Shown here piece after piece: positions 1,652 to 56,535 of a stretch of DNA of 64,000 bases. The stretch lies in sequence record OR529409.1; one strand, written 5' to 3'. A program made the position numbers and the translations under genes. Below the pieces are notes generated by a model that saw only the letters and a program-made list of their open reading frames with translations, searched no databases and had not been told where the DNA came from. How positions within the stretch are numbered: the stretch's first letter is position 1; every line of letters starts with the position of its first letter.

Positions 1652-1692
1652 TATGTCGAACCATATTTAACTTTCGAATCCGGGGAATAACG

Positions 1693-3537
1693 ATGACGTT
1701 ACCTACTCAAAACCCTATTCCGAGCTCATCTATAACCGATCAGCTCTTTAATGCTGAAAAAATAGATCAGGTCGTTAACTCAGATGATTTACAGTACACC
1801 GACAGGTTTGGTAGAACCAGATTTACCTTTGCTGGACTTTACAACATCATTCAAACATGGTTAGGATCGCTAGCCAATCCAGACGGTGCCGCTAATATAG
1901 GACTCCGACAAGGAGGAACCGTCCAGTCTGAAATTAGAACTGTTTCTCTTGAATCCTGCGGCGCGGTTGGTGATGGTGTAACTGACGATACTTTAGCTTT
2001 TAATAAAGCAGCGGCGACGGGCTTTAACTTGGTTCTGGGGAAGAACAAAGATTATTTGGTCTCTCAACCAGCCTTATTACCTTTTGTCACCGGTTATCAG
2101 AAAGGAGCGCGGCGGTACATAGAAGGCAATGGGTCCACGATAATAACGACCGGCGCCTACGAACCATTCAATCAGTATGTTGATGAAGCCAAATCAGGAA
2201 CTCGAGTTATTAAATACGGATGGAATTTTTATAATCTAAATTTCAAAGGATTCGGTAGTAAAGACGGCGAGTATAATGTTATCAATAAAGCAGACGCCAT
2301 TTCTTTTGCCTACGGAGAAGCAGTCAATATATCTGGCATTGGTTTGAATAACGTCCTGCGCGCTTACGGAATGACCCTCGCTAAAAATATTTACGGCGAC
2401 GACCTTCGTAACGCTTTGTATTCATGTTATCTCGATCCTATCGATAATCTCACCGGTAAAAATACAATTCTTAATTCTCGTTTAGGTTGGTCGGCGGGAG
2501 AAGGGCTTATCCTGAAAGGGACGGATATTTATGTAGACGGGTTTATGTACGATTACGCCGGGTGTATCAGCCCTAATTCTATCGACGATATAAACGCAAA
2601 AGCTCAAGGTAAGTTAGGCACTAACCGAGGTTCAGGGATAAGTTGTGGGGCTGACGATTACCCGGCGAGCAATGTTACCATTACGAACGTTACGGGTAAA
2701 TTCTACGGTGCGGCAGGATTGTCATTAAATGGCGATAATATCAACGTAGGGGGATCCATTAACGTTGGAAGCGTTTACACCGACAATTTAGTTCCTTCTT
2801 TAACAGGCTCTGCTTTGAGTTGCAATATTAGAAATTCTTACATTGGTAAAGTTAAAGCCGGAAATGTTTTTGGTGGAATGGGACTCAATGCTCACTCTAA
2901 TAACTTCACTATAGCCGGGTTTGAGTGTTTTACTAAACAAACCTCCGTTGGCGCAATATTTTTCTCAGCAGGAGATACCGCTGATAATCAGATTACAAAA
3001 GGTCATATCGGCGATCTCATCTGTCACGGGCAATTAACCATAAATGACGATTTCTATTTTAATACTGCAGGTATCATTATTGACAACGTCCATCTGGGAC
3101 AGATAAATAACCAACAGGGCGGTTATCTCATCAAAATCCAGAAGGCCGGGCGTATTGGTAAGTTCACCGCGTTAGCGACAACATCTACCGCCAATAACAC
3201 CTGTATGTATGTCGGGGATAACGCTATTTTCGGCGAGCTCAATTTTGAAAATATTTACGGGACTTGTCTTGAGGTCAAAGCGGATGCGGTCCCCGTCATC
3301 GGTAATCTAAATATCCGAGGGAAGAAAGGTACCCTCCCGCCGATCATCATTAATGGTACGGGTGCGGCGTCGTTGAACTGGGGTAACGTGAAAATACTGG
3401 GTACGTCGACAGCAAGCCCTAAATTGAATGGTCAGTTAACGATGGACAGTTACACGGGACCGGATTGGGTAATAGCGACCACTGGGGTTGCAGCTAGTGT
3501 TTCCTTCCCGACCAGAACTTCTACAAATTTAACATAA
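1693..3537 (+). CDS. Tailspike / putative capsule depolymerase
   Basis: N-terminal anchor MTLPTQNPIPSS..DQLFNAEKIDQVVNSDDLQYTDRFG; GAVGDGVTDDTLAF motif typical of the start of a pectate-lyase-like beta-helix. Confidence 0.9.
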   Translation: MTLPTQNPIPSSSITDQLFNAEKIDQVVNSDDLQYTDRFGRTRFTFAGLYNIIQTWLGSLANPDGAANIGLRQGGTVQSEIRTVSLESCGAVGDGVTDDTLAFNKAAATGFNLVLGKNKDYLVSQPALLPFVTGYQKGARRYIEGNGSTIITTGAYEPFNQYVDEAKSGTRVIKYGWNFYNLNFKGFGSKDGEYNVINKADAISFAYGEAVNISGIGLNNVLRAYGMTLAKNIYGDDLRNALYSCYLDPIDNLTGKNTILNSRLGWSAGEGLILKGTDIYVDGFMYDYAGCISPNSIDDINAKAQGKLGTNRGSGISCGADDYPASNVTITNVTGKFYGAAGLSLNGDNINVGGSINVGSVYTDNLVPSLTGSALSCNIRNSYIGKVKAGNVFGGMGLNAHSNNFTIAGFECFTKQTSVGAIFFSAGDTADNQITKGHIGDLICHGQLTINDDFYFNTAGIIIDNVHLGQINNQQGGYLIKIQKAGRIGKFTALATTSTANNTCMYVGDNAIFGELNFENIYGTCLEVKADAVPVIGNLNIRGKKGTLPPIIINGTGAASLNWGNVKILGTSTASPKLNGQLTMDSYTGPDWVIATTGVAASVSFPTRTSTNLT

Positions 3538-3555
3538 GGTTAGACGAGGGCTAAT

Positions 3556-5721
3556 ATGACTCTTCCTACTCAAAACCCCATTCCTAGTTCAACTAAGAAC
3601 GATCAGCTCTTTAATGCTGAAAAAATAGATCAGGTCGTCAATAGTGACGACCTCCAATACACCGATAGATTTGGTAAGAAGCGATACACCTTTGCTGGGC
3701 TTTATAATTTCATCCAAACGTGGATTTCTGGTATCAGCGGACCTACAGGTGCCGGGAACATCGGGTATAACACCTCCGATGTTGGAACTCAGCTAGATAA
3801 CTTTAATTACGATTTTGCTAATAAAGTTGTTGACTCAGTTGCGGTTTTACGTAACCTTACTGCCGGTAAGTTAGTTCGTAGAACTTTGGTTAAGAATTCC
3901 GCGGGTTACGCCAATGGCGGCGAATTTGTTGCCGATCCTTTAGATACCACTACTGCCGACGACGGTGTCTTCACTATCATTTCTAAAGATAATATTCGAT
4001 TCAAACGTTCATTGCCGGCTAGCGGTCGTTATCAAATCGATTGGTGGTATGATCCTACCACTGACTCTGCAGACTATTCCCTAGTTATTAATAAGGCAGC
4101 TAATTTCGTTAAAACGAGCAACAGCGACGATACTGCTTTATTACCCACGTACCAGACTGGTTTAACTATGGTCGGGTCTGGTGGGATAAAGAAATGTCTG
4201 ACGGGCGCTGTAATTTTTGCTTATTTGAATGACTGGGATTTCAATGGCACAATTCTAGATTATACCGGAACCACCTTAACAGGGATTGATTACTTCCGTG
4301 TGCGTACCGCTCGTTGCTCAACTGTTTCTAACCTCACTATTCGGGGGCTGACCTCTAAAGATCAGGTTTCCAACAATACCGGTTTTGCAATGGGTTCTTT
4401 CGCGCCCAATGTTTACGGTGTACCGTGTGCGTCAGTAGAGATTAACAACCTACTCGTCGAAAATGCGAGTAATGCCATTCGGTTAGGTTCTAACGTCTAT
4501 ATTGTTAAGTTCTCGAATTCCTACTTCACCGGTTACCTGAAAGGTATCACCTGTGACGCTTCTCCAGTTAATTCAGGAGAAAATATGTCGTTCGATCATT
4601 GTGTATTTGCGAATGGCGCGATGCCTATTTTCTTAACGACGTTCAGCCTAAATTTCTTGCATTGCAGTTTCGATTACAACGGCTGGGGCACTGAAGCAGC
4701 TATGTTAGCCTGGAAAGATAACGGCTACTTCAACATTAATGGTAATATGAATTTCGATAGATGCCATTTTGAATGGGGAAACCAATTCTCTCGCTGGCAA
4801 GGTCCGGTATTTAAAGGTATTGGGACAGTTTCGATCAAAGATTCGGTTATCCATATTGCCGACATTCAAAATATCGATTCCGGTATGACCTATCCAAGAA
4901 ACATCCATACGTACTTCTATCAGTCCACCGACGCTAACTTGAAGACCTCCTTCCTTATTCTCCAGGATGTTAATGTCGCTAACTCCTGTTGGGATACCTC
5001 TAATGGTGCATGGACTAATGGTTTCCGGTGCGATATGGATGGAATGGTCATTTCCCGTTTTCAAGGGATGTATCGTAATTTCTGGAAAACTCCTTACACG
5101 GACTTTACTAACTATGTGAACAGCCATCTCCCATCACTATTGCCCAACTCGACGTATCAGAATACTGCAGCTGCTGCAATCGCGGCTTACCCGGCAAGTA
5201 GTAAGTTGACAATGACTGGTGACAGCAACGCCACCATCTCCTATGACTCCACTAATAACGCGATCATCGTATCGACAACCACCAATACAACGAGTAATGT
5301 GGTGACTTTGGATTGGTACGTTAGGGCGGTTCCTTACGCGTTCCCTCTGTGGTCAACGTCAATCATTGGGGATAGCGCTAACACTACTGTCGCTGGGGAT
5401 TTGGCTAACGTTAACTTAGCTGGATCGGTCATGGGTGGATTCTTAGCGTCTAATGGAACCTTTACAGCTACACAGCGTTTAACCTGGACTCCGACCGCAG
5501 CTGGTATTGCGACCGCCAAATCTTTACGTACTGCGTATATTACCGGAACTGATGATTACTTGCCTTGCTCAGATGCGAATATTGAATATATCAGATTACG
5601 TATCACGCTGACTAACTTTTACGCGACAACAGCCGGTAACAAAATAACCGCTAAGATTACCCCTCCACGATTAGAATTTGTGAAGGTAGGGTTTAGTGAT
5701 TCATTAAGAAGAACGGCCTAA
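3556..5721 (+). CDS. Tailspike / putative capsule depolymerase
   Basis: Same N-terminal anchor; GGEFV..DDG linker; beta-helix-like body. Confidence 0.9.
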   Translation: MTLPTQNPIPSSTKNDQLFNAEKIDQVVNSDDLQYTDRFGKKRYTFAGLYNFIQTWISGISGPTGAGNIGYNTSDVGTQLDNFNYDFANKVVDSVAVLRNLTAGKLVRRTLVKNSAGYANGGEFVADPLDTTTADDGVFTIISKDNIRFKRSLPASGRYQIDWWYDPTTDSADYSLVINKAANFVKTSNSDDTALLPTYQTGLTMVGSGGIKKCLTGAVIFAYLNDWDFNGTILDYTGTTLTGIDYFRVRTARCSTVSNLTIRGLTSKDQVSNNTGFAMGSFAPNVYGVPCASVEINNLLVENASNAIRLGSNVYIVKFSNSYFTGYLKGITCDASPVNSGENMSFDHCVFANGAMPIFLTTFSLNFLHCSFDYNGWGTEAAMLAWKDNGYFNINGNMNFDRCHFEWGNQFSRWQGPVFKGIGTVSIKDSVIHIADIQNIDSGMTYPRNIHTYFYQSTDANLKTSFLILQDVNVANSCWDTSNGAWTNGFRCDMDGMVISRFQGMYRNFWKTPYTDFTNYVNSHLPSLLPNSTYQNTAAAAIAAYPASSKLTMTGDSNATISYDSTNNAIIVSTTTNTTSNVVTLDWYVRAVPYAFPLWSTSIIGDSANTTVAGDLANVNLAGSVMGGFLASNGTFTATQRLTWTPTAAGIATAKSLRTAYITGTDDYLPCSDANIEYIRLRITLTNFYATTAGNKITAKITPPRLEFVKVGFSDSLRRTA

Positions 5722-5732
5722 CCACTTTAAAC

Positions 5733-5757
5733 TTCCCCTCTTGAATAAAGAGGGGAA
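5733..5757 (+). terminator. Intergenic hairpin
   Basis: ttcccctctt-gaata-aagaggggaa. Confidence 0.55.
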
Positions 5758-5769
5758 AGGAGTCTTTCA

Positions 5770-7905
5770 ATGACGCAGCCAACCAAGAATCCTATTCCCA
5801 GTGGGAATATTTTAGATCAACTATTTAATGCCGAAAAAATCGACGAGTTTGTTGGATCTTCGGAGGATTATTATACTGACCGGTTTGGGGTTAAACGCCT
5901 CACGATTACGGGTCTCAATAAACTTTCCGCCCAAAGCAACGCTAATGCGATCTCATCACTTGGTTTTTACGAAGATGGCGTGATCCAAGTAAGAGATAGA
6001 AACCAGTTAATTCGTTACAGCGACGTTCTTTATCAAATAAACCCCGATGTGACCCTGCCCTTTACAACAACCGGGACTGATGCCACAAGCTGGGCTAATG
6101 ATTCTTCGAAATTCACCCCCGTCGGAGCCGGTAAACTTAGTTATGATCTCCAAACCGATTTGGGTGGGCAGATAGTCAGTTTAAAAATTAATAAAGCGTC
6201 TTCGAAGAAAAGAACCTCTGCGGAGAAGGCGACGGACAGACCAAATCTCCTTGATTGGGATACTGATTCTCAATCCGATGACAGCATGAGGTTAAGAAAA
6301 GCCCTCATTGATGGCGTTGACCATATCCAATTACCTGGCGTATTAGAATTAGGTCGTCCCATTTATTTTGGTGAAGTGGATATCTCTACCGCTTTACGAT
6401 TTGAGGGGGTTGGTTCCCAGGGGGTTAATCGTAACGGTAGTGTGATAATCAAAGCCTCTGGCGCGGCTTATGGGATGCACTTTAACGGTGTGGGAGCGGC
6501 GACACGACCCGCGGGAGGAGGACTCTACAATATCCACCTTTCCGGACAGGCCAGCGCTGACACAGGACCGTTAGTTAAAGTAACGTCGTGGTCTTATTTT
6601 AAAGCCATTAACGTCGGGTTTAACAACATAAGCGATTATGGGCTTAGATTAAAAGACGTTATGGAATCAACCATTTCCGGATGCTTATTTAGAAGGTTGG
6701 GGAGTAACGATACCGGGTGTATTCTTCTCGACGATTATTTGGGGGTGCAAAATAATAACGTTAATAACTTACACATAGTAGGTTGTACGTTTGGGTTAAA
6801 TTCCGGGGAGTGGATCAAGGCCACTCAGTTAGCCAACATCGATGTGATTTGGATTCAGAATAATAAATTTGAATGGGATGCCGTGCCGGTTAGTCCTAAC
6901 ACTGACGCGCTATATGTCATCGACCTAGGTAAAGCCGCGAAAACGTTTATAGACCACAACACTTTTACCTATTTTAATTCTAATAATAATAAATACGCCG
7001 GCGTGTTAAGGATGCAAGCCCCATGTCTCTCTACCACACTTTTCACTAATAACCAGATGTTTGGTTGTGGTGGTAATGCTGGGTTAATAGAGGGAGGGTC
7101 TCTATTTGCCAGGGATAACTTCAATACTGTTGCGGACGGAATAGGTAATGTGGTATTCACGGTAACCAGTACCAAAAGGCAAGATATAGATGACGTGTTT
7201 AACATTCACAACAATGGGAATTTAGCCTACAGTACGAAAGTCTCACCCCCCAATTTCATTTCTTGCCATAAGTTATCCGGAACAATCAACAATCCATTCG
7301 TTGTGGACTCCGGCGCGTCGTATTGGACGGTTATGAATACCCCACCCTCAACGGAGATAAGACGTTTTCGGCTACCAGGTCATCTTCTCGGTGAAAATTC
7401 CCCGGTGAGAATAAAGGTAAGAGTCAAATGCGCCGATAGTTCTGGGGCGGATGGAGCAGTGCAGCTTGTCGCTGACGATACTACCCTTACCGCTGTTTCC
7501 GTTACAGCGGCAGGAAATTGGCAAACCGTGGAATTCTTAATAAAAGGCAACCTTTTAACTTCCGGGGTTTTAAAAATCATGAACTCCGGTACGGTAAATG
7601 TTCTACTCGACGGTATTTATTACGAGAAGGCAGAGTATATCGATTGGAACTTCGCGTTTGCAGTTGGAACGCTCACACCCGGACAAGTATTAATATCTGC
7701 CGCTCAGTCATCTTCTGATATTGCTGGTGTTGCTAACAAGATTAAAGGTTGCAGTGGGGTTTGGTTTAATGGCAGTTCGGTAGGAGCCCTCTATAGTCCT
7801 ACTATGTACCAAGTGGGTAATTCCTTTAAAGTAACAATTAGTAATCCAGGAACGACTGATCTGGCCACTGGTATAACGAGGTGCACTGTAAGAGTCTTAT
7901 TATAG
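5770..7905 (+). CDS. Tailspike / putative capsule depolymerase
   Basis: Anchor MTQPTKNPIPSGNILDQLFNAEKIDEFVGSSEDYYTDRFG; NQLIRY..LPFTTTG..SWAND subdomain seen in enterobacterial phage tailspikes; beta-helix body and probable C-terminal beta-sandwich. Confidence 0.9.
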   Translation: MTQPTKNPIPSGNILDQLFNAEKIDEFVGSSEDYYTDRFGVKRLTITGLNKLSAQSNANAISSLGFYEDGVIQVRDRNQLIRYSDVLYQINPDVTLPFTTTGTDATSWANDSSKFTPVGAGKLSYDLQTDLGGQIVSLKINKASSKKRTSAEKATDRPNLLDWDTDSQSDDSMRLRKALIDGVDHIQLPGVLELGRPIYFGEVDISTALRFEGVGSQGVNRNGSVIIKASGAAYGMHFNGVGAATRPAGGGLYNIHLSGQASADTGPLVKVTSWSYFKAINVGFNNISDYGLRLKDVMESTISGCLFRRLGSNDTGCILLDDYLGVQNNNVNNLHIVGCTFGLNSGEWIKATQLANIDVIWIQNNKFEWDAVPVSPNTDALYVIDLGKAAKTFIDHNTFTYFNSNNNKYAGVLRMQAPCLSTTLFTNNQMFGCGGNAGLIEGGSLFARDNFNTVADGIGNVVFTVTSTKRQDIDDVFNIHNNGNLAYSTKVSPPNFISCHKLSGTINNPFVVDSGASYWTVMNTPPSTEIRRFRLPGHLLGENSPVRIKVRVKCADSSGADGAVQLVADDTTLTAVSVTAAGNWQTVEFLIKGNLLTSGVLKIMNSGTVNVLLDGIYYEKAEYIDWNFAFAVGTLTPGQVLISAAQSSSDIAGVANKIKGCSGVWFNGSSVGALYSPTMYQVGNSFKVTISNPGTTDLATGITRCTVRVLL

Positions 7906-7908
7906 AAA

Positions 7909-7944
7909 TTTAACTCTCTGCCGACTTACCGGCAGAGAGTTAAA
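7909..7944 (+). terminator. Intergenic hairpin, 15-bp stem
   Basis: tttaactctctgccg-acttac-cggcagagagttaaa. Confidence 0.7.
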
Positions 7945-8018
7945 GAATTTTATGCTGATCTAAATTCAGTAGACTTGCGCAAGTCTTTTACACTACATTC
8001 TTTTAAAGGAGTAACCTC

Positions 8019-10403
8019 GTGGCTACAACTCCAACTACGGGTGACATCCCCAGCAATGCTGCGGTGGACCTCAAGTTTAACTCGGAACAATTCGACCGAG
8101 TAATGAATTCTGACGATCTGACTTATACGGATCGTTTTGGTAAAAAACGCATTACAATGAAAGGGGTTCAGGAACTCGCTAATGGCTTCCAGGATACTTT
8201 CACTAATCTGTTGGGTTCTCCCGACGGATTTAAATTAATCGGCGGAGTGAAATCTTTTGATACCCTGAGATCGACCCCAGTGAGAACCGAAGGCCAACGT
8301 ATTTTCCTCAAGTCCTATCATGAAAATGGAACTACTGGCGGAGGGATCTTTGTTGGTCACATCGGGACCAAGTTAGATGATGGCGGTACTGTGGCCCAGG
8401 GCGTAGGGTTCTATTGGGAAAGGGCTGATTGCACGGAGATATCCGTAGAAATCTTTGGCGGTACACCTAACAATAACACGATTGATAATTCAGATTTCAT
8501 CATTGCGGCGGATTTAGTTTCTTTTTCCAAGGGGGTTCGATTAACCGGGAAAGGGTTAAACTATAGTGTAGGGAGATCCTTTACACTGGCTACCCCTAAC
8601 ATAAAGGATATTAAAATATCCCCAACCTCCAGCTTTACAGGCGACGCTCCAACATTTACCTGCGATCAAAATACCGGAGAGTTGGTCTTAGAAGACGTTG
8701 ATATTTCCGACTTCAAAGGCCGAGGGAGTAATTGCACAAAAGGGAACTATACTCTCGTCCCGACGATCACCTTTAAAGGAACTTGCAAATTCAATGGCAA
8801 TGGCGGGGGTCCTACAAGAACAACTGTTTTACCTAAAACAACTACTATATCTGCGGCTGCTGACCTGACCACCACGTCTGTTATTTCTGTGGCGGACACC
8901 TCTAAATTTATAGCGGGTGATTACGTCCTGGTAAATGGGGTCAGATATCGTATTCTCTCCGTCGATTCTTCTTCCCAAATTACTTTTTATAACACATCTT
9001 CAATCCCCACTATTTACAATGACGGTGTCAACAGTTCCGTTTCAGCGGGCGATGTGCTGGAAAAGGTTTTTGTTGTGAACACGGCTTCAGAAGCAGTCAT
9101 CGATGTCGCGGACAGCACTATATTTAAAGTCGGGGATGCCGTTTGGATAGGGGATAGCAAATGTTTAATTTCCGTCATCAATAATTCAACCCAGATAACT
9201 TTAGTGAACGTAAACGGCGTCCCCACTTTGCAATATGGAGGGACTGGAACGGGAAGGTATACTTCCGGTCAGTACGTCACTAAGGATAAAAACGGTAAAA
9301 ACGGATTTACGATTAATACGTCGTCTTCGATTGGTTGGAATATCAATCTAAAAGGCAACGTCGAATTTAATAACAACGGATGGTTTGGGTTATTTCAGTG
9401 GTGTAATGCCTCTGGAGGAACAGTTTTTGGGGGAGCCAAAGCCAATAATAACGGATATATCGGCGTGGGCTTGGGCTACGTGAAGGGTGGGGAACTGAGC
9501 GGATTTGTAACCAACAATAATGGTAACAACGGTTTAGATCTGTTTGAAACTTACTCGGAGACGACTATTCATGATTGCACGTCCAATAATAACGGAGTTG
9601 ACGGTATTTTCGTTGCAAGTTCTAAAACAGCACCCAAACTTTACGCTAACACGTGCGTGGGTAATAAAAGAATAGGGATGCTGGCCAATGGTAGAACCGT
9701 GACGCCGGTAGGACTCACTGTACTGGATAATTTCTGTGTCGGTAACGATTTATATTCCATCTGTTTAACTGGAATAGGAGGGGGGATCGTAGGCGATTGT
9801 TCTGTTGGCGGTGGGATGCAAGGCATCCGTATCGAGGGCAAGAACGGCATAGCCAACCCCAAATCAATAACGGTAAGGGATTGTAAATTCAGTTCTGTTT
9901 CGTCCGAATCCGATATCTTTGCCAATATTGGTGGATACACCAATGGCGGTGATCAGGGATCCTTACATCTCAATAACAACAGTTATTTTGGAAGGACGCC
10001 AAAATTTTCTATCACTAATATCGATGTGGATAAATCAACCTTTATCCCGGCTGGCTACTCTAAGCCTAACGGAACGGATTTAAGCGCATCGGCCGGGACG
10101 GCGATAGCGGTCGGCGTTACATTTTTTAAACCCCACGCTCCGACTGTTATAGACAATTCTGCCGAAGACTTCACCGTTCAAATTTATACCAATTCCGGGC
10201 TGACCACAGTGGGTACGGTAACTACTGCGACAAGAACGGCTGGAGTGGAACTTTCTAATGGGGCGACTAGTAACGGGCGGATAATAGGTTCGCCGGCTTA
10301 TGGAACGTTCTCTTATAACTTCACGCTCAGCTCACCCGGGACAAGATATTTGCATATCAAATCTAAATACGGGTCTTCGGTTATCAAATTAACCTGGAGC
10401 TAG
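8019..10403 (+). CDS. Tailspike / putative capsule depolymerase
   Basis: Anchor MATTPTTGDIPSNAAVDLKFNSEQFDRVMNSDDLTYTDRFG; Asn/Gly ladder repeats (NNNG.NG) typical of right-handed beta-helix; GTG start after ggag. Confidence 0.9.
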   Translation: MATTPTTGDIPSNAAVDLKFNSEQFDRVMNSDDLTYTDRFGKKRITMKGVQELANGFQDTFTNLLGSPDGFKLIGGVKSFDTLRSTPVRTEGQRIFLKSYHENGTTGGGIFVGHIGTKLDDGGTVAQGVGFYWERADCTEISVEIFGGTPNNNTIDNSDFIIAADLVSFSKGVRLTGKGLNYSVGRSFTLATPNIKDIKISPTSSFTGDAPTFTCDQNTGELVLEDVDISDFKGRGSNCTKGNYTLVPTITFKGTCKFNGNGGGPTRTTVLPKTTTISAAADLTTTSVISVADTSKFIAGDYVLVNGVRYRILSVDSSSQITFYNTSSIPTIYNDGVNSSVSAGDVLEKVFVVNTASEAVIDVADSTIFKVGDAVWIGDSKCLISVINNSTQITLVNVNGVPTLQYGGTGTGRYTSGQYVTKDKNGKNGFTINTSSSIGWNINLKGNVEFNNNGWFGLFQWCNASGGTVFGGAKANNNGYIGVGLGYVKGGELSGFVTNNNGNNGLDLFETYSETTIHDCTSNNNGVDGIFVASSKTAPKLYANTCVGNKRIGMLANGRTVTPVGLTVLDNFCVGNDLYSICLTGIGGGIVGDCSVGGGMQGIRIEGKNGIANPKSITVRDCKFSSVSSESDIFANIGGYTNGGDQGSLHLNNNSYFGRTPKFSITNIDVDKSTFIPAGYSKPNGTDLSASAGTAIAVGVTFFKPHAPTVIDNSAEDFTVQIYTNSGLTTVGTVTTATRTAGVELSNGATSNGRIIGSPAYGTFSYNFTLSSPGTRYLHIKSKYGSSVIKLTWS

Positions 10404-10445
10404 TAATGTGCGGGGAACCCCCCGCTACTTTAAAGGATTGGTTTT

Positions 10446-12347
10446 ATGACTACCCCAACTAACAACGATATACCGAGTAACTCGGTTCAAGATCGGTTAT
10501 TTAACGCCGAGAAGTTCGACGAATTTATGAACTCGGATAATACCAATTATCTTGACCGGAAAGGAAATAGCAGGTGGACTTTATCAGGGATACGTTCGGC
10601 AATACAGAATTGGATGACCGTTTTCTCTAGTTCTGACGGCGCCAGCGGGATAGGATTAAGTCAGTCAGGGAGCGTCCAGGATGGAATAAAGTATGTGACT
10701 CCTCAGATGTTTGGGGCGAAGGGAAACTTTAATTCCACGGACCTGACTGGTGATGATGATACCGCGGCATTTCAAGCGGCTATCGATAAAGCAATATCGC
10801 TAGGATACCAGCATGTTTATGTCCCAGCTGGGAATTATCTTATTACCGGTGAGCTTAACCTTTGCGGGACTGGCAAGAGTGGTTTTGCCGGTGTCAAACT
10901 GGTCGGTTATAATTGGGATAGGACGATTCTTTGGTTTATGGCCGCCTCGCAAACATCAATCTGCATCTCTATGAGGGGCGGATCGGGCGGAGCTACCGGT
11001 CGGTCAGTCTGTGATTTGCAAGTTAGGGCCCATCCGGCCACAGTGGGCCTTGGAATAGCTTTACAACTCAGAGGGGCGTGCTTTGCAGTAGTAAATGGGT
11101 TTATCGCGACTAACTGTTATACCGGTCTACACCTTTACAATGCTGGGTCAGCGGGAACCTTTACCGAATTTAACCGATTCACCAATTGTAGATTGAATGG
11201 AAACGTTAACAATATTTTCTTCGAGAGAGACGGGGGAGATAATTCATTCCACGGCAACAACTTTATTAATGTGCAAAATCAGGTTGGTAAAAACTGCATA
11301 GGGGTCAAAATACTCGGTACCTCTGGAGTTTGTTACTTATACAACCAATTTTGGCAAATGAACTTCTTTGGCCGAGGTGACGGGACAGCTACGGCTTTCG
11401 ATATTACCAACTGTAATACCGATTACGTTTCGGGGACACTCACGGCCGAACAAGTTTTAAACTTCAACATTAATGATGGTGGATCAACCAACTTTGAGTT
11501 CCACGGCCCTTTCTTCGGGACTCACAGCATCATTTTTAATGTCCCTACTGAAGACGATTCCAAGCTAGGTAGAGCGGTTTTCAGTAACCGTTGGAGTAAA
11601 TCCGGTACAATGTCTGATGCCTCTCTAACCGGATTAACGGTACGGCCCTATCAAAATGATTTTGCCGATAACTCTAATAACGGTACTTTCCCTGGTATCT
11701 TCAGAGTAAGCGGGACAAATAGGGATTCGTTAATTTTCGCGAACTATAACTACGGCGGTAACGATTTTGTTTTCGGCACTGTAGCTTATGGTAAATCGAT
11801 TCAGGATTTTGTATATAAATTCAAATTCTCGTGGGACGGAACCAGATACACGACGGTAGGGGGGTTCCTTGACGTTGTCACTAGCACAGGAACGGTCCGC
11901 TTTAGCGGGACCATTATCAGACCTGGTGCGGACAACATCTGTTCATTGGGGGATACTAGTTACCGATGGACTCAAGTCTGCTCTGTTAACTCTGCGTTAG
12001 TGACTTCCGACGCCCGTCGTAAAAGTTCCCCGAGACGGCAAACCAAAGAAGAGCTCGATTGTTTTCACGAAATAGCAAGACTACCCTTTGTCTGGACCTG
12101 GTTAAAGGAACTTGATCCTAAGGACGACGGGAAACTGCACTCCGGCCCTACCGTGCAATCAGTAATAGAAGTCATGTCTAAGTATCAATTAGACTGGAAG
12201 GAATATTCTTTTATTGATTATAATGAAGAGCAGGACATCTACTCTTTCCGCAAGGAAGAACTTTTACTTTGGGTAGTAGGGAGTGTCGCTCTTAAACAGG
12301 AAGAATTGGAAAACAGATTGGTTAAGCTAGAAGGACGCATTGACTAA
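10446..12347 (+). CDS. Tailspike/depolymerase with C-terminal intramolecular chaperone (peptidase S74-like)
   Basis: Shared anchor; FGAKG..DDTAAFQAAI motif; C-terminal TSDARRK..LHSGPTVQ..LE.RL..LE resembles the autocleaving chaperone domain. Confidence 0.9.
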   Translation: MTTPTNNDIPSNSVQDRLFNAEKFDEFMNSDNTNYLDRKGNSRWTLSGIRSAIQNWMTVFSSSDGASGIGLSQSGSVQDGIKYVTPQMFGAKGNFNSTDLTGDDDTAAFQAAIDKAISLGYQHVYVPAGNYLITGELNLCGTGKSGFAGVKLVGYNWDRTILWFMAASQTSICISMRGGSGGATGRSVCDLQVRAHPATVGLGIALQLRGACFAVVNGFIATNCYTGLHLYNAGSAGTFTEFNRFTNCRLNGNVNNIFFERDGGDNSFHGNNFINVQNQVGKNCIGVKILGTSGVCYLYNQFWQMNFFGRGDGTATAFDITNCNTDYVSGTLTAEQVLNFNINDGGSTNFEFHGPFFGTHSIIFNVPTEDDSKLGRAVFSNRWSKSGTMSDASLTGLTVRPYQNDFADNSNNGTFPGIFRVSGTNRDSLIFANYNYGGNDFVFGTVAYGKSIQDFVYKFKFSWDGTRYTTVGGFLDVVTSTGTVRFSGTIIRPGADNICSLGDTSYRWTQVCSVNSALVTSDARRKSSPRRQTKEELDCFHEIARLPFVWTWLKELDPKDDGKLHSGPTVQSVIEVMSKYQLDWKEYSFIDYNEEQDIYSFRKEELLLWVVGSVALKQEELENRLVKLEGRID

Positions 12348-29758: not shown

Positions 29759-30217
29759 ATGAAAAGCATCGTTTTAGTTTTACTCTCTTTCTTTTCCGCT
29801 TCCGTATTTGCTGGCGCAATGGGAATGGTCGATCCTCTGGACGTTGTAGGTGATCGTTGCGCCCCAGGCGATATCGTCTTTTACGGTCAAACCGAAAAGG
29901 GTCATAAAGAAGTTCTCGTCTGCCGTTGGGACAATGATGTATTTTATTCCTACGGTAAGATCGGTCAGAAACCAGAGCTGTATCTTAAAGTTAACGTTCG
30001 CGACGTAAGGGCTCAGGTTGAAGACACCGACAGCACCAGCGGCGAGCAAGTCATCATCAAAAATGGCGACACGCTTTATTACGTTGGCGCGAAATCTTAC
30101 TTCAACGAAGCTAAAGATGTGGGTTGGGTTAACGTTACCGATACCAATGGTAAAAAGATCGTTAACATTCCACTGGTAGGCAGCGGAACCATAAGCGACA
30201 TTCGTAATCAATTTTAA
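29759..30217 (+). CDS. Secreted periplasmic-type protein
   Basis: Signal peptide ending VFA; C..F..T.KG.KEV.VC..YSYGK.G.KPEL pattern. Confidence 0.8.
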   Translation: MKSIVLVLLSFFSASVFAGAMGMVDPLDVVGDRCAPGDIVFYGQTEKGHKEVLVCRWDNDVFYSYGKIGQKPELYLKVNVRDVRAQVEDTDSTSGEQVIIKNGDTLYYVGAKSYFNEAKDVGWVNVTDTNGKKIVNIPLVGSGTISDIRNQF

Positions 30218-30592: not shown

Positions 30593-30946
30593 GTGAAAAA
30601 CATTTTAGGTCTCATCATCCTGTTCTTTCTGGCAACAACCCCGGCCCGAGCCCACTTGTTTGGACCGGTGGACCAAGTCAACATCCGTGGTTACGAAACG
30701 ACTCTGATCAACATGCGGTTAAAATCGGATCGTAACGATTACTACGCGTTTAGCGTCGGAGACGTCACTAAGGTGGACAGTAAGGGCAATCCGGTTAAGA
30801 TGTACGTGATGGCTGGCATGGAAGCCATTTTCCCAATGACCATTAGTAATAAGTACATTAAAAACGACCACATCAAGATCTGTTCCTGGCCTCTTGATGC
30901 CCACTCGCAATTCACCGGAAAGGTATGCTTCGATGTTCGCGTATAA
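30593..30946 (+). CDS. Secreted single-Ig-domain protein, pilus-chaperone-like
   Basis: Signal peptide ..ARA|H; YY.F.V strand; KICS..GKVC Cys pair. Confidence 0.55.
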   Translation: MKNILGLIILFFLATTPARAHLFGPVDQVNIRGYETTLINMRLKSDRNDYYAFSVGDVTKVDSKGNPVKMYVMAGMEAIFPMTISNKYIKNDHIKICSWPLDAHSQFTGKVCFDVRV

Positions 30947-31328
30947 AGCACTCATCATCCTCATTGCAGCGTTTTTCACTAACCTGGCGTTAGCTGACGC
31001 ACCCTACATGACTAACAACACCGCCTCGTCTTCTGAACGAGTACAGGTCGGTGATGTGAGTTGCGATTCTTCTAAACCACAGTCGACTATTAATATAGGA
31101 GCTTACGGTAACAACGGCAATCGTTACAGTTACGAAGATTCTGATAAAGGCGGGTTCGTATCCATCTCCATCCCTATCGGGGAATCTGCCGTAAAGACGG
31201 ATTGCTCGCGCCTCTATGACTTAGGCGTGAAGATGAAAGAAGTTGAATTAAAACAGCGTGAAATGGCCGTTGCTGCTGCCGAAGAAAACCTTCGTCTCCA
31301 ACAGCAGCGAGCTTTAGATTTCAAATAA
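30933..31328 (+). CDS. Secreted protein with Cys pair and C-terminal coiled coil (pilus-module partner)
   Basis: Signal peptide ..ALA|D; ERVQVGDVSC; GFVSISIPIG..DCSRLYDL; start moved to ATG 30933 overlapping upstream gene. Confidence 0.6.
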   Translation: MFAYKALIILIAAFFTNLALADAPYMTNNTASSSERVQVGDVSCDSSKPQSTINIGAYGNNGNRYSYEDSDKGGFVSISIPIGESAVKTDCSRLYDLGVKMKEVELKQREMAVAAAEENLRLQQQRALDFK

Positions 31329-31373
31329 CCAACCTTAACGTTATACCAACCAACCCAACAGGAAAATTCCTAA

Positions 31374-31865
31374 ATGAAAAAGATCATGATCGCTATTGCT
31401 CTTCTGTCTACCACAGCTTTCGCCAACGCCGCTTCTGAGCAGGTATGGAACGCGTCTCTCACCAACAGCCAAATCACCTGCGGCATCGACTACACCGGCG
31501 GTACCCCGGTTGAAGGCGGTATTCTTACTGCTAACGAAAGCGGGACGAATACGTCCAAAGCTATTTCCTTCACCCTGATCGCGAACACGCAAAACGTCAA
31601 CTGGCAGATCACCGAAGCCAAACTGGTTCAAAACACCGGCCGGTTTGATTTCAGCGATAACCTGCTGAGCGTAAACGATAAGACCAAAACGTCGGTCTAC
31701 ATCAACGATCAGGAATACGCGTGGCCTGACGCCGCTCAAGCCAAAGCGTTGGCCAGCAATTCTCGCGTGATCAAACTGGCGCCGAAAATCAATCTGGAAC
31801 AGTCGGTCTTCCCGGTCGGGACAACCCGCATCCAAGGCAAGATTGTCATCAACTGCATTCAGTAA
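31374..31865 (+). CDS. Secreted pilin/fimbrial-subunit-like protein
   Basis: Signal peptide ..FANA; TCGI near N-terminus; alternating terminal strand FPVGTTRIQGKIVINCIQ; C-ending codon bias. Confidence 0.55.
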   Translation: MKKIMIAIALLSTTAFANAASEQVWNASLTNSQITCGIDYTGGTPVEGGILTANESGTNTSKAISFTLIANTQNVNWQITEAKLVQNTGRFDFSDNLLSVNDKTKTSVYINDQEYAWPDAAQAKALASNSRVIKLAPKINLEQSVFPVGTTRIQGKIVINCIQ

Positions 31866-31884
31866 TCGTCATCTACACATCTTC

Positions 31885-31909
31885 AATAGGGGGAGTATCT
31901 CCCCCTATT
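31885..31909 (+). terminator. Terminator after the pilin-like gene
   Basis: aatagggggag-tat-ctccccctatt followed by T run. Confidence 0.75.
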
Positions 31910-31940
31910 TTTTACACCCCTCACTTTTAGGAAAACGCAA

Positions 31941-32339
31941 ATGTCTACTATCTCTCAAAACTCAACTACTGATATGAACGGCAAAGTGACTTTTAATAAA
32001 GGCGCTTTCCCGCAGCTGATGACCCCAACTTTCATGATCTTCATCTGGGCCTATCAGCCGGTTATGAACGCCATCCAGGGCTGGAACCCGGCCATAGGTT
32101 TCATCTTCGCCTTTGTCGTCTTCCTGATCTGGTTTTGTCATGACCGCGCATTCTTGGCTTCACAAGGTGCGTTCGTCCCTCACTGGCTTTGGTTCCTTTT
32201 CGTTCCGGTGTACATCTATAAACGCCAGAAACGTAACGGTAATAGCCGTTGGTGGGTCGTCTTCTGGCTGATCAGCGTAATAATGGGGTTGGTGGTTTCC
32301 GCCGCCACTATGGCAGTATTCCATCCCCAGGGTTACTGA
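31941..32339 (+). CDS. Integral membrane protein
   Basis: 3-4 hydrophobic segments; WLWFLFVPVYIYKR. Confidence 0.8.
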   Translation: MSTISQNSTTDMNGKVTFNKGAFPQLMTPTFMIFIWAYQPVMNAIQGWNPAIGFIFAFVVFLIWFCHDRAFLASQGAFVPHWLWFLFVPVYIYKRQKRNGNSRWWVVFWLISVIMGLVVSAATMAVFHPQGY

Positions 32340-32344
32340 TTTCA

Positions 32345-32372
32345 TTTGTGAGGCGGAATTCCGCCTCACAAA
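32345..32372. terminator. Perfect 28-bp palindrome
   Basis: tttgtgaggcggaattccgcctcacaaa. Confidence 0.7.
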
Positions 32373-32414: not shown

Positions 32415-33059
32415 ATGGCAACTCCACGTAAAAAGAAACCCGCAACAAAAAACCGCATGACTTTCGAACAAAAACGTCTGTCTGAAATCATTAAGAAAGT
32501 CTATCACGAGCTCTATTTTGTCGGGGCGTCTTTTTATAAACCGACAGCAGTCAACGCCAATAAGCTCTTCTTGGGCGCTCAGGGCAAGGAAGTACATACC
32601 GCCAGGAGAATTCTATTAGATCATTTGATCAGCCTTAAGACGAACTGGCCTTTATGGGTTGGGTGTTTCTTCAATACCCCTAATGGGATCTCTGTGGCTA
32701 CCGCAGACTCTTTATGGGAAGCGGAGACGATGTTATCCTTCGGGGGACAGTTCAATAAAAGAATAGAGACTGTGGTAGATGGTATCATCGAAGCTGAAAA
32801 TGACCCCGACTGCACTCGGGAAACATTGATAGGTTACGGATATTTCTTTAGCCACTGCGACATCTACAACATGTCCGGGACAGACGAACGTTTAGTAAAA
32901 CTGATGCTCCCCTATATGGATAAACATTTGGCTAAAGAAGTTAAACCAGAAGACGTCGTCGTTAGCACAGACCTTTTGATCGAATCAATAGTCAAACGTG
33001 GTGGGGTCGCTAAAGATGGCAAAATCGAAGAATACATCGAGGTGTCGGAGGAGTGGTGA
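32415..33059 (+). CDS. Hypothetical protein
   Basis: tagga RBS plus AACATCATG leader. Confidence 0.75.
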   Translation: MATPRKKKPATKNRMTFEQKRLSEIIKKVYHELYFVGASFYKPTAVNANKLFLGAQGKEVHTARRILLDHLISLKTNWPLWVGCFFNTPNGISVATADSLWEAETMLSFGGQFNKRIETVVDGIIEAENDPDCTRETLIGYGYFFSHCDIYNMSGTDERLVKLMLPYMDKHLAKEVKPEDVVVSTDLLIESIVKRGGVAKDGKIEEYIEVSEEW

Positions 33060-33613
33060 AACGATTATACCTGTTACTCATTTTGCTCGGATTAAGTTTT
33101 AGTAGTTTGGCCAGAGTCGATATCGTCCTGGTCTGTAACAAAGTTGGAGAGACCAAAGGAACTGGGGTTGTTAAACCGACTCTTTACAACACCGACATCA
33201 ATTATTTTATAATTTCCAAAAATAAAATCTCGTTACTTAATGGGCGTTACGGCGGGGTTCTTATGGAACTGCCTTTTTTCCTTTATCATGATAAAGGAAA
33301 AATAGAGGGTAGTGGGACCGCTGGGTACGATAAGATCGATCTCGGTTTTACTAACGGCGACCTCGTCATAAACCTCACTAGGTTCACGAAATTCATAGCG
33401 ACCCCGGATAACAAAGAGAACAAAGTAGATAAAACGATTGAGTTCTCAGAATGTTATATTTTGGATCGGATTATCACGCCTGATGTAGAAGAAGCAGTAC
33501 CTTTCTCTGAAACTGATAATAGTGATGTTAAAGGCAGAAGAGGTCCTGGTCCGGGACCTGGTCCGGCTAATCCAGGCGGTCACCCCAACGGTCCTCCGGG
33601 ACCACCCCGTTAA
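33053..33613 (+). CDS. Secreted protein with Pro/Gly-rich C-terminal tail
   Basis: Signal peptide ..SSLA; ends GPGPGPGPANPGGHPNGPPGPPR. Confidence 0.7.
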   Translation: MVKRLYLLLILLGLSFSSLARVDIVLVCNKVGETKGTGVVKPTLYNTDINYFIISKNKISLLNGRYGGVLMELPFFLYHDKGKIEGSGTAGYDKIDLGFTNGDLVINLTRFTKFIATPDNKENKVDKTIEFSECYILDRIITPDVEEAVPFSETDNSDVKGRRGPGPGPGPANPGGHPNGPPGPPR

Positions 33614-41777: not shown

Positions 41778-42371
41778 ATGATGATGATCAACTGCTTAGA
41801 ACCTAACGAATTCGCTCAGTTTAAAGAACAGTGGGATAAATATCTCGAGGAGGGTCTTCCCGGACTCGATGAAAGAATGAAGGGCCCGATGCTTATCCTG
41901 AACGCAATACCTGGGGTCGCAACCCGCTTTTGTTGTTCCGGTCATACCTTTGAAGAAAGGTTATCGTCCCACCCGACCAAAGCGTATTCTCGAGTGCAGA
42001 AAAGGAACTTCATTTTTGTCGTTGAAGAAGGCCGCGCCGATATTTTCTTTGCGTTTGAAATACTCTTCAAATTATTGAACAAAGACGAGTTTAGTTTTTG
42101 CCGGCCTTCTTTAGAAACCACTCTGCTCAAGAAAAACTTCGGTGAGTCGGAAACCTATCCGGTTTGGGTATTTGAAATGAATTGGGTTTACGAACTCACC
42201 GAGGAAGAAAAAATAAAGGGAAGGGATAAGACCCAGAACGAACTCTGGGAGAAACTCCTCAGAGGACTGTTCCTGATCACCGATCCAAAGGAACGTCATA
42301 AACACCGGGATATTCTGACCGAACCCTATTTCGACCAACCAGGACTTATTAGGAAAACACATAATGTTTGA
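41778..42371 (+). CDS. Hypothetical protein (LN..PG..T..CCSGH motif)
   Basis: aggag RBS; overlaps nadR start. Confidence 0.7.
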   Translation: MMMINCLEPNEFAQFKEQWDKYLEEGLPGLDERMKGPMLILNAIPGVATRFCCSGHTFEERLSSHPTKAYSRVQKRNFIFVVEEGRADIFFAFEILFKLLNKDEFSFCRPSLETTLLKKNFGESETYPVWVFEMNWVYELTEEEKIKGRDKTQNELWEKLLRGLFLITDPKERHKHRDILTEPYFDQPGLIRKTHNV

Positions 42372-43473
42372 TATCGGCATTGTCGTTGGTAAATTCGCCC
42401 CTCTCACCCAGGGGCACATCAACCTCATCACCCAAGCCTCCCTCCAGGCTAAGAAAGTTATCGTTGTGTTAAGTCACGACAATCGCTGGTTAGCGCAACA
42501 ATGTCCTCGTGATCAGAAGGCGTTGACGTTCACTAACCGTCTTCGTTGGTTACAGCAGCATTACGCCGATTCGGACCATATTGATATTAAATATATCATT
42601 GAAGATGACATCCCGGAATTCCCCAACGGATGGAGCGCTTACTGTAGCCTCCTCAGGAAGATCTACACTGAGGAACAGCACAAGAGCTATAAAGGAATCG
42701 GATCAGTCGACAACACTCGTCGGATTGCTCAAACCGTGGCCATTTTCAGTAGTGAAATCGATTACGATAAAGGTTACGAGGAGCATCTTCCTGAAGTCAG
42801 TCACGTCGTCGTTGATGCGCATCGTACAGCGGTCCCCATTAGTGCGACTAAAATTCGTGAGAATCTTTACCCCAACTGGGAATACCTCCCTTCTATCGTT
42901 CGTAAGGACTACACCAAACGGATTGTCATCCTCGGCCAGGAATCTTGCGGTAAAAGTGTCATGGTCAAAAACCTGGCTAAGATGTTTAATACGTCCTGGG
43001 TAGAGGAGTACGGTCGGACGTATTGTGAAACTGAGCTCTGTGGTTCAGAATCGACACTCCGTAGTGATGATTACCCGATCATCGCTTATCGCCATAAGGA
43101 ACTGGAAATCCAAGCCATGCGCTCGGCTAACCGCATTTGCATCGTGGATACGAATGCGTTCATTACCGAATACTACCATCGGTTGTATGAAGGGAAACCT
43201 AATCGTATCGTCTCTGCTATAGCAGCTGAGGAAAACTACGATCTGGTCATCGTGCTCGAACCTACGGTGGAATGGGTTGATGACGGCCTTCGTAGTAATC
43301 CCGAAAGACAACGGACAACTGAATTATTTAACCTCATGAGTCTGGAGTTCCCTAACCAGTTCCCGGAAGGAAGAACGTTCCATATTTCTTCCTCCGATTA
43401 CAAAGTTAGGTTCGACCAGGCTTACGAGATTATCAAAACCTTTACCCAGCGTGTTAACTCAGGTGACTTTTAA
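42364..43473 (+). CDS. nadR: Bifunctional NMN adenylyltransferase / nicotinamide riboside kinase, lacking the HTH
   Basis: VVGKFAPLTQGH (T/HxGH); VPISATKIR; Walker A GQESCGKS; EEYGRTY; VDT; PTVEWVDDGLR. Confidence 0.93.
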   Translation: MFDIGIVVGKFAPLTQGHINLITQASLQAKKVIVVLSHDNRWLAQQCPRDQKALTFTNRLRWLQQHYADSDHIDIKYIIEDDIPEFPNGWSAYCSLLRKIYTEEQHKSYKGIGSVDNTRRIAQTVAIFSSEIDYDKGYEEHLPEVSHVVVDAHRTAVPISATKIRENLYPNWEYLPSIVRKDYTKRIVILGQESCGKSVMVKNLAKMFNTSWVEEYGRTYCETELCGSESTLRSDDYPIIAYRHKELEIQAMRSANRICIVDTNAFITEYYHRLYEGKPNRIVSAIAAEENYDLVIVLEPTVEWVDDGLRSNPERQRTTELFNLMSLEFPNQFPEGRTFHISSSDYKVRFDQAYEIIKTFTQRVNSGDF

Positions 43474-55311: not shown

Positions 55312-56535
55312 ATGTTCGAATATCTCATTCAGATAAATCAGGTTCTCTCTTCTGTCCCTATTATCGGTGGGAGTTTAGCGGTAGCCTTAGGGGGCGGGAT
55401 CATTGCCGCCTTCTGGAAAGGACCTGCGTTACTCTCGAGGATTTTTAACTCCACTGTTGTGGTTTCCTTCACTCTTAATAACTCAGGGTGGGGCAATAAT
55501 ACCAAGCACTACATTGCGTTTATTAAATGGTTTAACCGTTCAGATATTCTTAAGATAACGCGATCTACTGGTTACGAGGCCGTTTACGACAGCTCTGGTA
55601 AAGGGCCTAGTGTCGGCAGTCATTTATTTCGATTTAAGAATAAATGGTACTATCTCAAAATCAAAGAACTCCCTTCTACGGGAAGCGAGCGTGAGAAGAA
55701 AGAGATATGTATAAAGACGTTAGGGTGTTCTGTCAGCATTTTCGACGATCTCTTCGAGGCCTTTAAGGATAAGACGGATGACGACGGAGAACTCAAAGTA
55801 AAACGGTTCAGGGACAATTACTGGTACGACGCCTGTCTTCTCAGCAGGAGGTCGTGGGATACCGTCATCTTAAACAAAGAAAAGAAGGTGGAAATAGTCG
55901 AACTCATCGAAGAGTTTTACGCGTCGAGGGAGTGGTACCGAGAAAGAGGAATACCGTATAAACTCGTTATTGTTTTGTACGGCCCGGCTGGGACGGGTAA
56001 GAGTACCGTTATCAAAGCGTTAGCACGCTTGTTTAACAAAAACCTTAACCTCATTTATCTTCACCAAATGACGGATAATACCTTCCCGGCCAGCATAGAG
56101 ACGGTAGAGCAAGATTCTTTTATTGCCATAGAGGATTTTGATACGGTTTCTTCTATAGGGTCGAGGACTAAACCTAAGGAGGAGAAAGATCCGTTCCAAA
56201 TAGACCTTTCAGACGGAGGATTAAACCTGACCACTGTTTTAAATACATTGGATGGGATCGCCGAATTGAACGGTCAGGTCATCTTTATGTCAACCAACCA
56301 TCTTGAAAAGATCGACAGTGCGCTGATCCGAACTGGTAGGGTGGATGCAAAAATCCACATCGGGTTTTTAGGTAAAGAAGAGGTCGAAGACTTCATTCAA
56401 ATTATGTATCCTGGAACAGAAGCCGATTTGGATTTTGTTACAGAAATCTCTGGGTCGGATCTTCAGTCGTATGCGTTAGCCAACAAAAGAAATTCGGAAG
56501 GTTTCTTAAAAGAGCTTAAGGACCATTTTAAATAA
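55312..56535 (+). CDS. Bcs1-like membrane-anchored AAA+ ATPase
   Basis: N-terminal TM; RSWDTVIL; WYRERGIPYK; Walker A GPAGTGKS; Walker B IAIEDFD; LNTLDG; STNH.EKIDSALIRTGRVD. Confidence 0.88.
   Translation: MFEYLIQINQVLSSVPIIGGSLAVALGGGIIAAFWKGPALLSRIFNSTVVVSFTLNNSGWGNNTKHYIAFIKWFNRSDILKITRSTGYEAVYDSSGKGPSVGSHLFRFKNKWYYLKIKELPSTGSEREKKEICIKTLGCSVSIFDDLFEAFKDKTDDDGELKVKRFRDNYWYDACLLSRRSWDTVILNKEKKVEIVELIEEFYASREWYRERGIPYKLVIVLYGPAGTGKSTVIKALARLFNKNLNLIYLHQMTDNTFPASIETVEQDSFIAIEDFDTVSSIGSRTKPKEEKDPFQIDLSDGGLNLTTVLNTLDGIAELNGQVIFMSTNHLEKIDSALIRTGRVDAKIHIGFLGKEEVEDFIQIMYPGTEADLDFVTEISGSDLQSYALANKRNSEGFLKELKDHFK

Follow-up and report, generated by a model that had tools for sequence, protein, structure and literature searches.

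A phage-borne module of three secreted proteins with a predicted pilin-like subunit: a candidate for an undescribed system acting on the cell envelope

What do three small secreted proteins, encoded side by side in the genome of a large phage, do to the cell that it infects? The question is raised by a 64,000-nucleotide (nt) stretch of sequence record OR529409.1, the whole of which we call the window, where three adjacent genes (here g1, g2 and g3) are read from one strand and closed by a terminator. Of the many exported proteins of large phages, very few have a known function, and a literature search found no description of this g1-g2-g3 trio. Genome comparisons showed the trio, carried here by a Klebsiella-type jumbo phage, to be one co-inherited secreted module that moves horizontally between unrelated phages, and we put it forward as a good candidate for a hitherto undescribed system by which phages act on the envelope. 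What we rate as new here is the occurrence of pilin-like secreted subunits in a phage-borne three-gene setting that lacks an usher.

A secreted three-gene module that moves between unrelated phages

The cassette comprises the following elements (aa, amino acids; a predicted cleavage site is given by the residues on its two sides):

30593-30946, + strand: g1, 117 aa, GTG start, AAAGG 7 nt upstream
30593-30652, + strand: predicted signal peptide of g1, residues 1-20, cleaved between ARA and H
30933-31328, + strand: g2, 131 aa, ATG start, GGAAAGG 9 nt upstream, overlapping g1 by 14 nt
30933-30995, + strand: predicted signal peptide of g2, residues 1-21, cleaved between ALA and D
31374-31865, + strand: g3, 163 aa
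31374-31430, + strand: predicted signal peptide of g3, residues 1-19, cleaved between ANA and A
31885-31914, + strand: intrinsic terminator, with an 11-bp G+C-rich stem (hairpin 31885-31908), a 3-nt loop and a T-run

The automatic open reading frame (ORF) call for g2 begins earlier, at TTG 30894; we placed the start at ATG 30933 because of the GGAAAGG 9 nt upstream and because the resulting N-terminus agrees with that of all homologues. Each protein opens with a basic n-region, a hydrophobic core and a small-x-small site, i.e., a predicted cleavable signal peptide (sites called by eye), and past residue 18 every family member holds exactly two Cys residues (9 of 9 for g1, 10 of 10 for g2 and 22 of 22 for g3). 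An earlier note on this DNA, written from the letters of the window, had described three adjacent genes, the first two overlapping, with one signal peptide and one Cys pair each, a handful of short motifs and a closing terminator; the genes and motifs are all present, and the terminator hairpin folds at -17.8 kcal/mol (z = -5.27). Compared with their counterparts in phage Miami, all three genes have a nonsynonymous substitution rate (dN) far below the synonymous rate (dS), showing that they are under purifying selection. The G+C content at third codon positions (GC3) is 0.675 for g3 and 0.615 for g1, which is 2.7 to 3.8 standard deviations above the mean of the + strand ORFs of the window (0.464 +/- 0.056), while g2 is ordinary at 0.481. 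The same note had taken a strong codon bias in g3 as a sign of high expression. The bias of g3 is indeed far above the window mean, and g1 shares it, but g2 does not and the membrane-protein gene downstream of the trio is also high; the values fit either strong expression or a recent import of g3 and g1 from a G+C-richer genome.

Searches for known families returned little. Pfam, NCBIfam and PADLOC families gave no match to g1, g2 or g3, the PADLOC-DB defence models gave none at an expectation value (E) <= 1 for the trio and five neighbours, and sequence profile searches of the PDB with g1, g2, g3 and their Vibrio counterparts (see below) returned nothing significant. When each family member was scanned singly against Pfam, weak matches only were obtained and no family was common to more than three members. 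None of the nine window ORFs of at least 300 aa matched Usher or PapD, in agreement with the earlier statement that no usher lies nearby.

The window matches Stenotrophomonas phage BUCTxx100 (252 kb) at 100% identity and shares 97-98% identity with the Klebsiella phages KPN8, Miami and YC1 of the genus Miamivirus. As the 97-98% matches are phages of Klebsiella and Raoultella, the Stenotrophomonas label of BUCTxx100 looks doubtful, or else points to an unusual host range. In phage Miami, the counterparts of g1, g2 and g3 are gp130, gp131 and gp132, which are annotated as hypothetical proteins with a terminator after them.

The trio recurred, intact, far beyond these close relatives. A tblastn search with g3 recovered 24 phage records from the Miamivirus, Eowynvirus, Maaswegvirus (phiKp24) and Erwinia Henunavirus (Vequintavirinae) groups; g2 recovered the same 24 enterobacterial phage records, and g1 recovered 21, missing the three Erwinia records, in which g1 is about 25% identical. 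Together with a phage-like contig of Klebsiella, a plasmid-like contig of Providencia rettgeri and two metagenome contigs (one is 362 kb), these four groups (the window representing Miamivirus) make up eight contexts in which the three genes co-occur in a constant order and with similar sizes, and in an all-against-all comparison of the flanks, g1, g2 and g3 were the only genes in common. The g1/g2 overlap is present in most lineages, which suggests translational coupling. No copy of the trio turned up in one-per-species bacterial genomes, PLSDB plasmids or 5,426 complete Escherichia coli genomes; judged by these searches, the family is rare outside phages. On the Providencia contig (L005), which carries ParA/ParB genes, the trio is flanked by two direct copies of an IS200/605-like insertion sequence (IS) remnant (7696-8704 and 10501-11375; diverged, with 73-84% identity), which speaks for mobility.

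The reading that we favour, tentatively and short of calling it probable, is that of a self-contained accessory cassette that moves horizontally among large virulent Enterobacterales phages, and once onto a plasmid-like contig, with exported products that act as one periplasmic complex around the pilin-like g3 and alter the envelope. The intact transfer across unrelated phage genera and to a plasmid-like contig argues for a portable benefit.

Two local arrangements concern the places where the trio sits. In Erwinia phage pEp_SNUABM_01 (L004, 1361-6492), it lies inside a tRNA array, between tRNA-Arg and tRNA-Cys; tRNA arrays are a typical landing place for accessory genes. In phage Miami (L001, 8340-9570, corresponding to about 31840-31960 of the window), an extra 1-kb gene that is missing from the window, gp133, directly follows g3. 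It encodes a homing-endonuclease-like protein (T5orf172/MUG113), and after the insert Miami holds a second copy of the g3 end and terminator, its own g3 end being slightly different. The arrangement looks like the footprint of a mobile endonuclease gene.

A pilin-like prediction for g3 and its partners g1 and g2

Mature g3 (144 aa) was modelled by AlphaFold2 (AF2) with a predicted local distance difference test score (pLDDT) of 85.5 and a predicted template modelling score (pTM) of 0.74, and its predicted fold is an immunoglobulin (Ig)-like sandwich that resembles chaperone-usher pilins. In Foldseek, chains of CfaB, the major pilin of CFA/I, were the best PDB matches of the model (E 5e-4, probability 1.0), and chaperone-usher pilins made up 22 of the top 50, including the PapG pilin domain, CsuA/B, SafA, FimF/G, PapA and PapE; the list also holds the filament subunits TasA, uromodulin/ZP and CanA. 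Within the family, the strand at 149-161 is the most conserved segment of g3 (0.82 vs 0.60 overall), with G155 invariant and G149, T151, I153 and K156 nearly so, and both Cys36 and Cys161 are invariant. Residues 20-35, ahead of the domain, are conserved at 0.63 vs 0.60 overall, with W25 nearly invariant, A27 invariant and a hydrophobic alternation that is only partial. We regard the predicted likeness of g3 to pilins as moderate, and as one of fold type rather than proof of homology.

At the sequence level, g3 stands apart. It had no Pfam match at E <= 1, the traces among its 22 family members were limited to Invasin_D4 in three (E 0.018) and Dr_adhesin in one (E 0.66), and fimbrial subunit profiles (Fimbrial PF00419, Fimbrial_CS1 and relatives) gave no significant match. 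The top matches in BFVD (A0A2I7S9Y1 and A0A482ID09) are unnamed, and no tie between them and the g3-like proteins of Vibrio phages was found. A profile hidden Markov model (HMM) search with g3 found only 11 representatives in 1.84 billion proteins, one of which, a giant RTX adhesin with Ig repeats (E 1.8e-5), we judged uninformative.

The earlier note had proposed that the phage hijacks or jams host chaperone-usher pili such as Mrk/Fim; on this view g3 would mimic a host pilin and enter the chaperone-usher pathway of the host, to be displayed on the surface or to block pilus assembly. The predicted fold and the conserved last strand would fit such a role, and so would the Providencia contig, where a chaperone-usher operon lies about 3 kb upstream of the trio (region 1048-6005), together with a TacA-type antitoxin gene. 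That sole adjacency is, however, interrupted by the toxin-antitoxin gene and the IS remnants, the closeness of operon and antitoxin gene to the trio may be coincidence, and no usher lies beside the trio in the other seven of the eight contexts. Neither did g3 or g1 resemble the contig's own fimbrial proteins: hhalign gave a probability of 0.1% for the g3 profile against the fimbrial subunit and 0.4% for the g1 profile against the PapD-like chaperone. Furthermore, the closest structural matches are class 5 (CFA/I-type) pilins, which belong to a pathway that Klebsiella, Erwinia, Serratia and Vibrio hosts do not generally have, the host orders differ in their ushers while the cassette stays intact, and g2 is given no role. 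We therefore hold the hijacking or jamming of host ushers to be very unlikely.

The mature form of g1 has 97 aa, an isoelectric point of 8.6 and a beta-rich sequence pattern, in which an alternating hydrophobic strand is visible at the C-terminus. It is the fastest-evolving of the three (conservation runs g3 > g2 > g1), with F23, F80, P81, C97 and C112 invariant among nine sequences. The earlier suggestion that g1 is chaperone-like found no support: g1 is too small for a two-domain PapD-type chaperone, whose mature form has about 200-230 aa, roughly twice that of g1, and in its nine members g1 matched neither PapD_N nor PapD_C at E <= 1. A single weak Pfam match, to Csd3_N2, was found within the family, and in an hhalign comparison of g1 with g3, the signal peptides alone aligned.

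In g2, a hydrophobic N-terminal stretch of about 16 residues ends at the ALA site given above and reads, by eye, as a signal peptide. It is followed by a highly conserved polar domain (residues 22-91) bracketed by Cys44 and Cys91 and by a C-terminal helix (residues 92-130), which is the sole part modelled with confidence (pLDDT 58.9 for the whole model). In three lineages, the helix differs in length from the rest by exactly seven residues, or one heptad, and since this is the difference that a coiled coil would tolerate, we read the helix as a probable coiled coil. The only PHROGs match for the trio and its neighbours was that of g2 to phrog_37374 (E 2.8e-6), making membership in this uncharacterised family the sole one established for the trio among the sequence tests run.

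A true extracellular fibre built by a new route, in which g2 oligomers form an outer-membrane conduit and g1 serves as chaperone in a minimal three-part pilus system, seems to us highly improbable. It would draw on the low-confidence model of g2, which contains a long beta-hairpin followed by a long helix, on an amphipathic strand at residues 75-83 and on weak matches to OEP (TolC-type) in three of 10 g2 family members (best E 0.0017). The OEP matches are most simply explained by coiled-coil composition, and none of the three proteins ends in an aromatic residue, as outer-membrane proteins typically do. We rejected g2 as an outer-membrane barrel, as the proposed hairpin (residues 24-57) is too polar for one and was modelled with a confidence below 50.

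Returning to the periplasmic complex that we favour, we can outline how it might work. The three products would be exported by Sec, each oxidised to one disulfide, and would work together in the periplasm of the infected cell. As the main building block, g3 would be a pilin-like Ig-fold subunit that undergoes strand complementation, with itself or with g1, as the conserved N-terminal segment and last strand suggest. We picture g2 as oligomerising via its C-terminal coiled coil, with the disulfide-bracketed domain possibly offering a docking surface, and g1 as a small beta-rich partner that may serve g3 as a cap, an adaptor or a holder. Since neither an usher nor any other conduit through the outer membrane is present, the assembly would most likely remain in the periplasm or at the inner face of the outer membrane, where it would alter the envelope, most likely for the purpose of blocking a later phage or masking a receptor, i.e., superinfection exclusion. 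The disulfides, the formation of a complex, the strand complementation, the location and the biological role are all things that we infer.

A counterpart in Vibrio phages and the weight of the evidence

Weak tblastn relatives of g2 occur in 173 Vibrio phage records. The comparison of g2 with a Vibrio homologue in hhalign gave a probability of 97.8% (E 1.3e-12) over 76 columns that include both Cys residues and cover the disulfide-bracketed domain, and the Vibrio g2-like members match phrog_37374 at 2.3e-51, showing, at the level of sequence profiles, that g2 is homologous to a Vibrio phage family. We sampled the surrounding module at five loci, in phages of different types. It consists of phrog_25895, phrog_25455, phrog_37374 and phrog_16916, all annotated as 'unknown function', and its order is g3-like, g1-like, g2-like. 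The g3-like proteins (149-156 aa) are secreted, have a pilin-like composition and carry one Cys close to the N-terminus and a second within the last strand; the g1-like proteins (132-137 aa) are secreted and contain two Cys residues. Their alignments to g1 and g3 are colinear, with the Cys residues aligned. The earlier note had mentioned similar motif triplets in fimbrial-like operons of Vibrio and marine phages, and this proved right in part, for g2 and for the analogous neighbours in Vibrio phages, while the similarity of g1 and g3 stayed below threshold.

In all five loci, the gene ahead of the module encodes a large protein (819-967 aa for the copies with an annotated full length), which we read as tail-fibre-like. 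We rejected this protein as an usher: no sampled one matched the Usher profile, and gp147 of phage Bennett, the only one read at its N-terminus, has no signal peptide. In four of the five loci, a gene for a small lipoprotein overlaps or comes after the g2 homologue, and one locus lacks it. The lipoproteins (phrog_16916; L012 2778-2963, L013 2664-2867 and L016 3152-3364) carry a lipobox and, after it, a mature part of about 45 residues that is acidic and conserved. The g2-like gene is overlapped at its 3' end by the lipoprotein gene, which resembles the layout of overlapped spanin genes or of the Cor/Llp-type exclusion lipoproteins.

This layout, typical of two-component spanins, brings up a role in lysis, in which g2 would be related to the inner-membrane subunit of a spanin or to another lysis accessory, and the trio would tune envelope disruption or the timing of lysis. 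The probable coiled coil of g2 would suit such a role, and the module of phage Bennett is closely followed by the genes for holin and M15 endolysin. Against this, the hydrophobic N-terminal stretch is short and closes with a small-x-small site in g2 as in its Vibrio relatives, fitting a cleaved signal peptide and not a membrane anchor; one of the sampled Vibrio phages has no lipoprotein; and in none of the enterobacterial contexts did a holin or endolysin appear next to the trio. In the window, no lipobox ORF of at least 20 aa was found inside or beside g2, so that a lipoprotein gene embedded in g2 was rejected as well. The co-inherited g1 and g3 would also be left unexplained, and we consider a lysis module improbable.

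Several observations weigh against the exported, pilin-like complex that we favour. The structural likeness of g3 to pilins amounts to a template modelling (TM) score of only 0.37-0.45 with a root-mean-square deviation of about 12-13 A, and it is drawn from a single monomer model. Residues 20-35 of g3, the would-be donor segment, form no regular strand in the model and are packed onto the domain instead (pLDDT about 80-85), and a bond between Cys36 and Cys161 of one chain could seal g3 as a complete Ig domain that does not polymerise. For the N-terminal domain of g2, the model stayed below a pLDDT of 50. No fimbrial, PapD or defence-system profile matched the trio, and the similarity of g1 and g3 to their Vibrio neighbours (E 0.041 and 0.0046, respectively) falls short of the threshold. 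The mutual binding or polymerisation of g1, g2 and g3 is likewise something that we infer. Superinfection exclusion, most plausibly the role, is argued only from analogy and from where the genes of distant relatives lie; a place after a tail-fibre-like gene is usual for exclusion genes (e.g., T5 llp and phi80 cor), and the trio of the window lies about 18 kb from the tail-fibre-like genes. The pilin-like character that the earlier note had assigned to g3 thus holds for its top structural matches and its conserved C-terminal strand, while the low TM score and the missing fimbrial HMM match limit it.

Some of these points would be at home in a different explanation, in which g3 and g1 are complete Ig-like periplasmic binders that, with g2, inhibit or redirect a host periplasmic component, e.g., an enzyme, a peptidoglycan or outer-membrane tether or a stress sensor, and in which no donor-strand assembly takes place. 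Ig-like sandwiches are common binding modules, the packing of residues 20-35, the modest TM score and a disulfide linking both ends of a single chain would all suit a finished domain, and the polar domain of g2, highly conserved across lineages, would fit a conserved host target. Yet strand-exchanged filament subunits and not generic Ig domains dominate the PDB matches of g3, its last strand is the most conserved part, as in pilins, and no search pointed to a host target. We regard such binders as possible, if rather unlikely.

A bolder proposal goes beyond the periplasmic complex, namely that the trio and the four-gene Vibrio counterpart represent an unrecognised usher-independent pilin-like assembly system that phages build in the host periplasm. 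Here, strand exchange would join g3 into a polymer or lattice stabilised by disulfides, with g1 and g2 starting or anchoring it, and the envelope would be remodelled. We deem this unlikely. If true, donor-strand-type fibre building would no longer be confined to cells and to usher-dependent or extracellular assembly but would occur in viruses and in the periplasm, with no need for an usher, and the finding would give a name to phrog_37374, phrog_25895, phrog_25455 and phrog_16916, i.e., to families in 173 Vibrio and about two dozen enterobacterial phage records. Exclusion at the level of the envelope, if true, would affect interference among Klebsiella phages. As three small proteins, the trio is a tractable structural target.

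Surroundings in the window and comparison with known systems

The trio sits amid other envelope-directed genes, those at 29759-30217, 31941-32339 and 33053-33613 in the list below, none of which is common to the other trio-bearing phages. Features of the window beyond the trio are:

91-12347: six consecutive large ORFs of 440-794 aa
29759-30217: 152-aa secreted protein ('putative secreted protein' in Miami)
31941-32339: 132-aa multi-pass membrane protein downstream of the trio, GC3 0.636
32345-32372: very strong terminator-like hairpin with a 12-bp stem, after the membrane-protein gene
33053-33613: 186-aa protein, hydrophobic signal at the N-terminus and Gly/Pro-rich tail at the C-terminus

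Given the hairpin at 32345-32372, the membrane-protein gene appears to be a short transcription unit of its own. Two of the six large ORFs contain beta-helix or pectate-lyase-like regions and an endosialidase-chaperone (Peptidase_S74) domain, and the whole run has the look of a tail fibre or capsule depolymerase gene array. Elsewhere in the window, two ORFs lie at 42364-43473 and 55312-56535; one carries cytidylyltransferase-like and AAA_28 domains in a NadR-like layout, and the second of the pair is an AAA+ ATPase with a BCS1-type N-terminal region.

Among known systems, the chaperone-usher pilins (Fim, Pap, Csu and Saf) come closest to g3. Its mature size of 144 aa is near that of CfaB of the alternate chaperone-usher pathway (about 147 aa), it is predicted to be exported by Sec, its last strand is strongly conserved with a conserved Gly before the strand, and a conserved N-terminal segment precedes the domain. 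Unlike these pilins, g3 has no fimbrial HMM match, its unit contains neither a PapD-type chaperone nor an usher, and the cassette is carried by virulent phages. The disulfides would differ as well: that of g3 would join the start of the domain to the third-from-last residue, whereas the classical pilin disulfide joins two neighbouring early strands.

A second comparison is with fibres that assemble by strand complementation without an usher, i.e., Bacillus TasA/TapA, the archaeal CanA cannulae and uromodulin/ZP. TasA appears in the Foldseek list of g3 (probability 0.84, TM 0.42) and is made from a three-gene operon that includes an accessory protein starting the fibre. The trio has no sequence relationship to any of these fibres, which form extracellularly or in organisms without an outer membrane, whereas the products of the trio would be trapped in the Gram-negative periplasm.

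Small exported accessory proteins of phages, such as T5 Llp, phi80/T1 Cor, P1 Sim and T4 Sp, act in the periplasm or at the outer membrane and are often encoded beside receptor-binding genes. The Vibrio counterpart module is placed like the Llp/Cor-type exclusion genes, by a fibre-like gene. In contrast to Llp, Cor, Sim and Sp, the trio has no sequence, family or PADLOC match, and it differs from the Llp-type proteins in lacking a lipobox and in having three components, one of them with a predicted pilin-like fold. With the spanins (lambda Rz/Rz1), the trio and its counterpart share a periplasmic protein with a probable coiled coil and, in Vibrio, an overlapping lipoprotein gene near lysis genes; unlike an i-spanin, g2 appears to be cleaved at its signal peptide, consists mostly of a non-helical disulfide domain and has no lipoprotein partner in the window.

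A last comparison is with the Vibrio module. It differs in its gene order, in the extra lipoprotein found in four of the five loci and in always following a large fibre-like protein, while it has a clear g2 homologue and neighbours that are like g3 and g1 in size and Cys layout.

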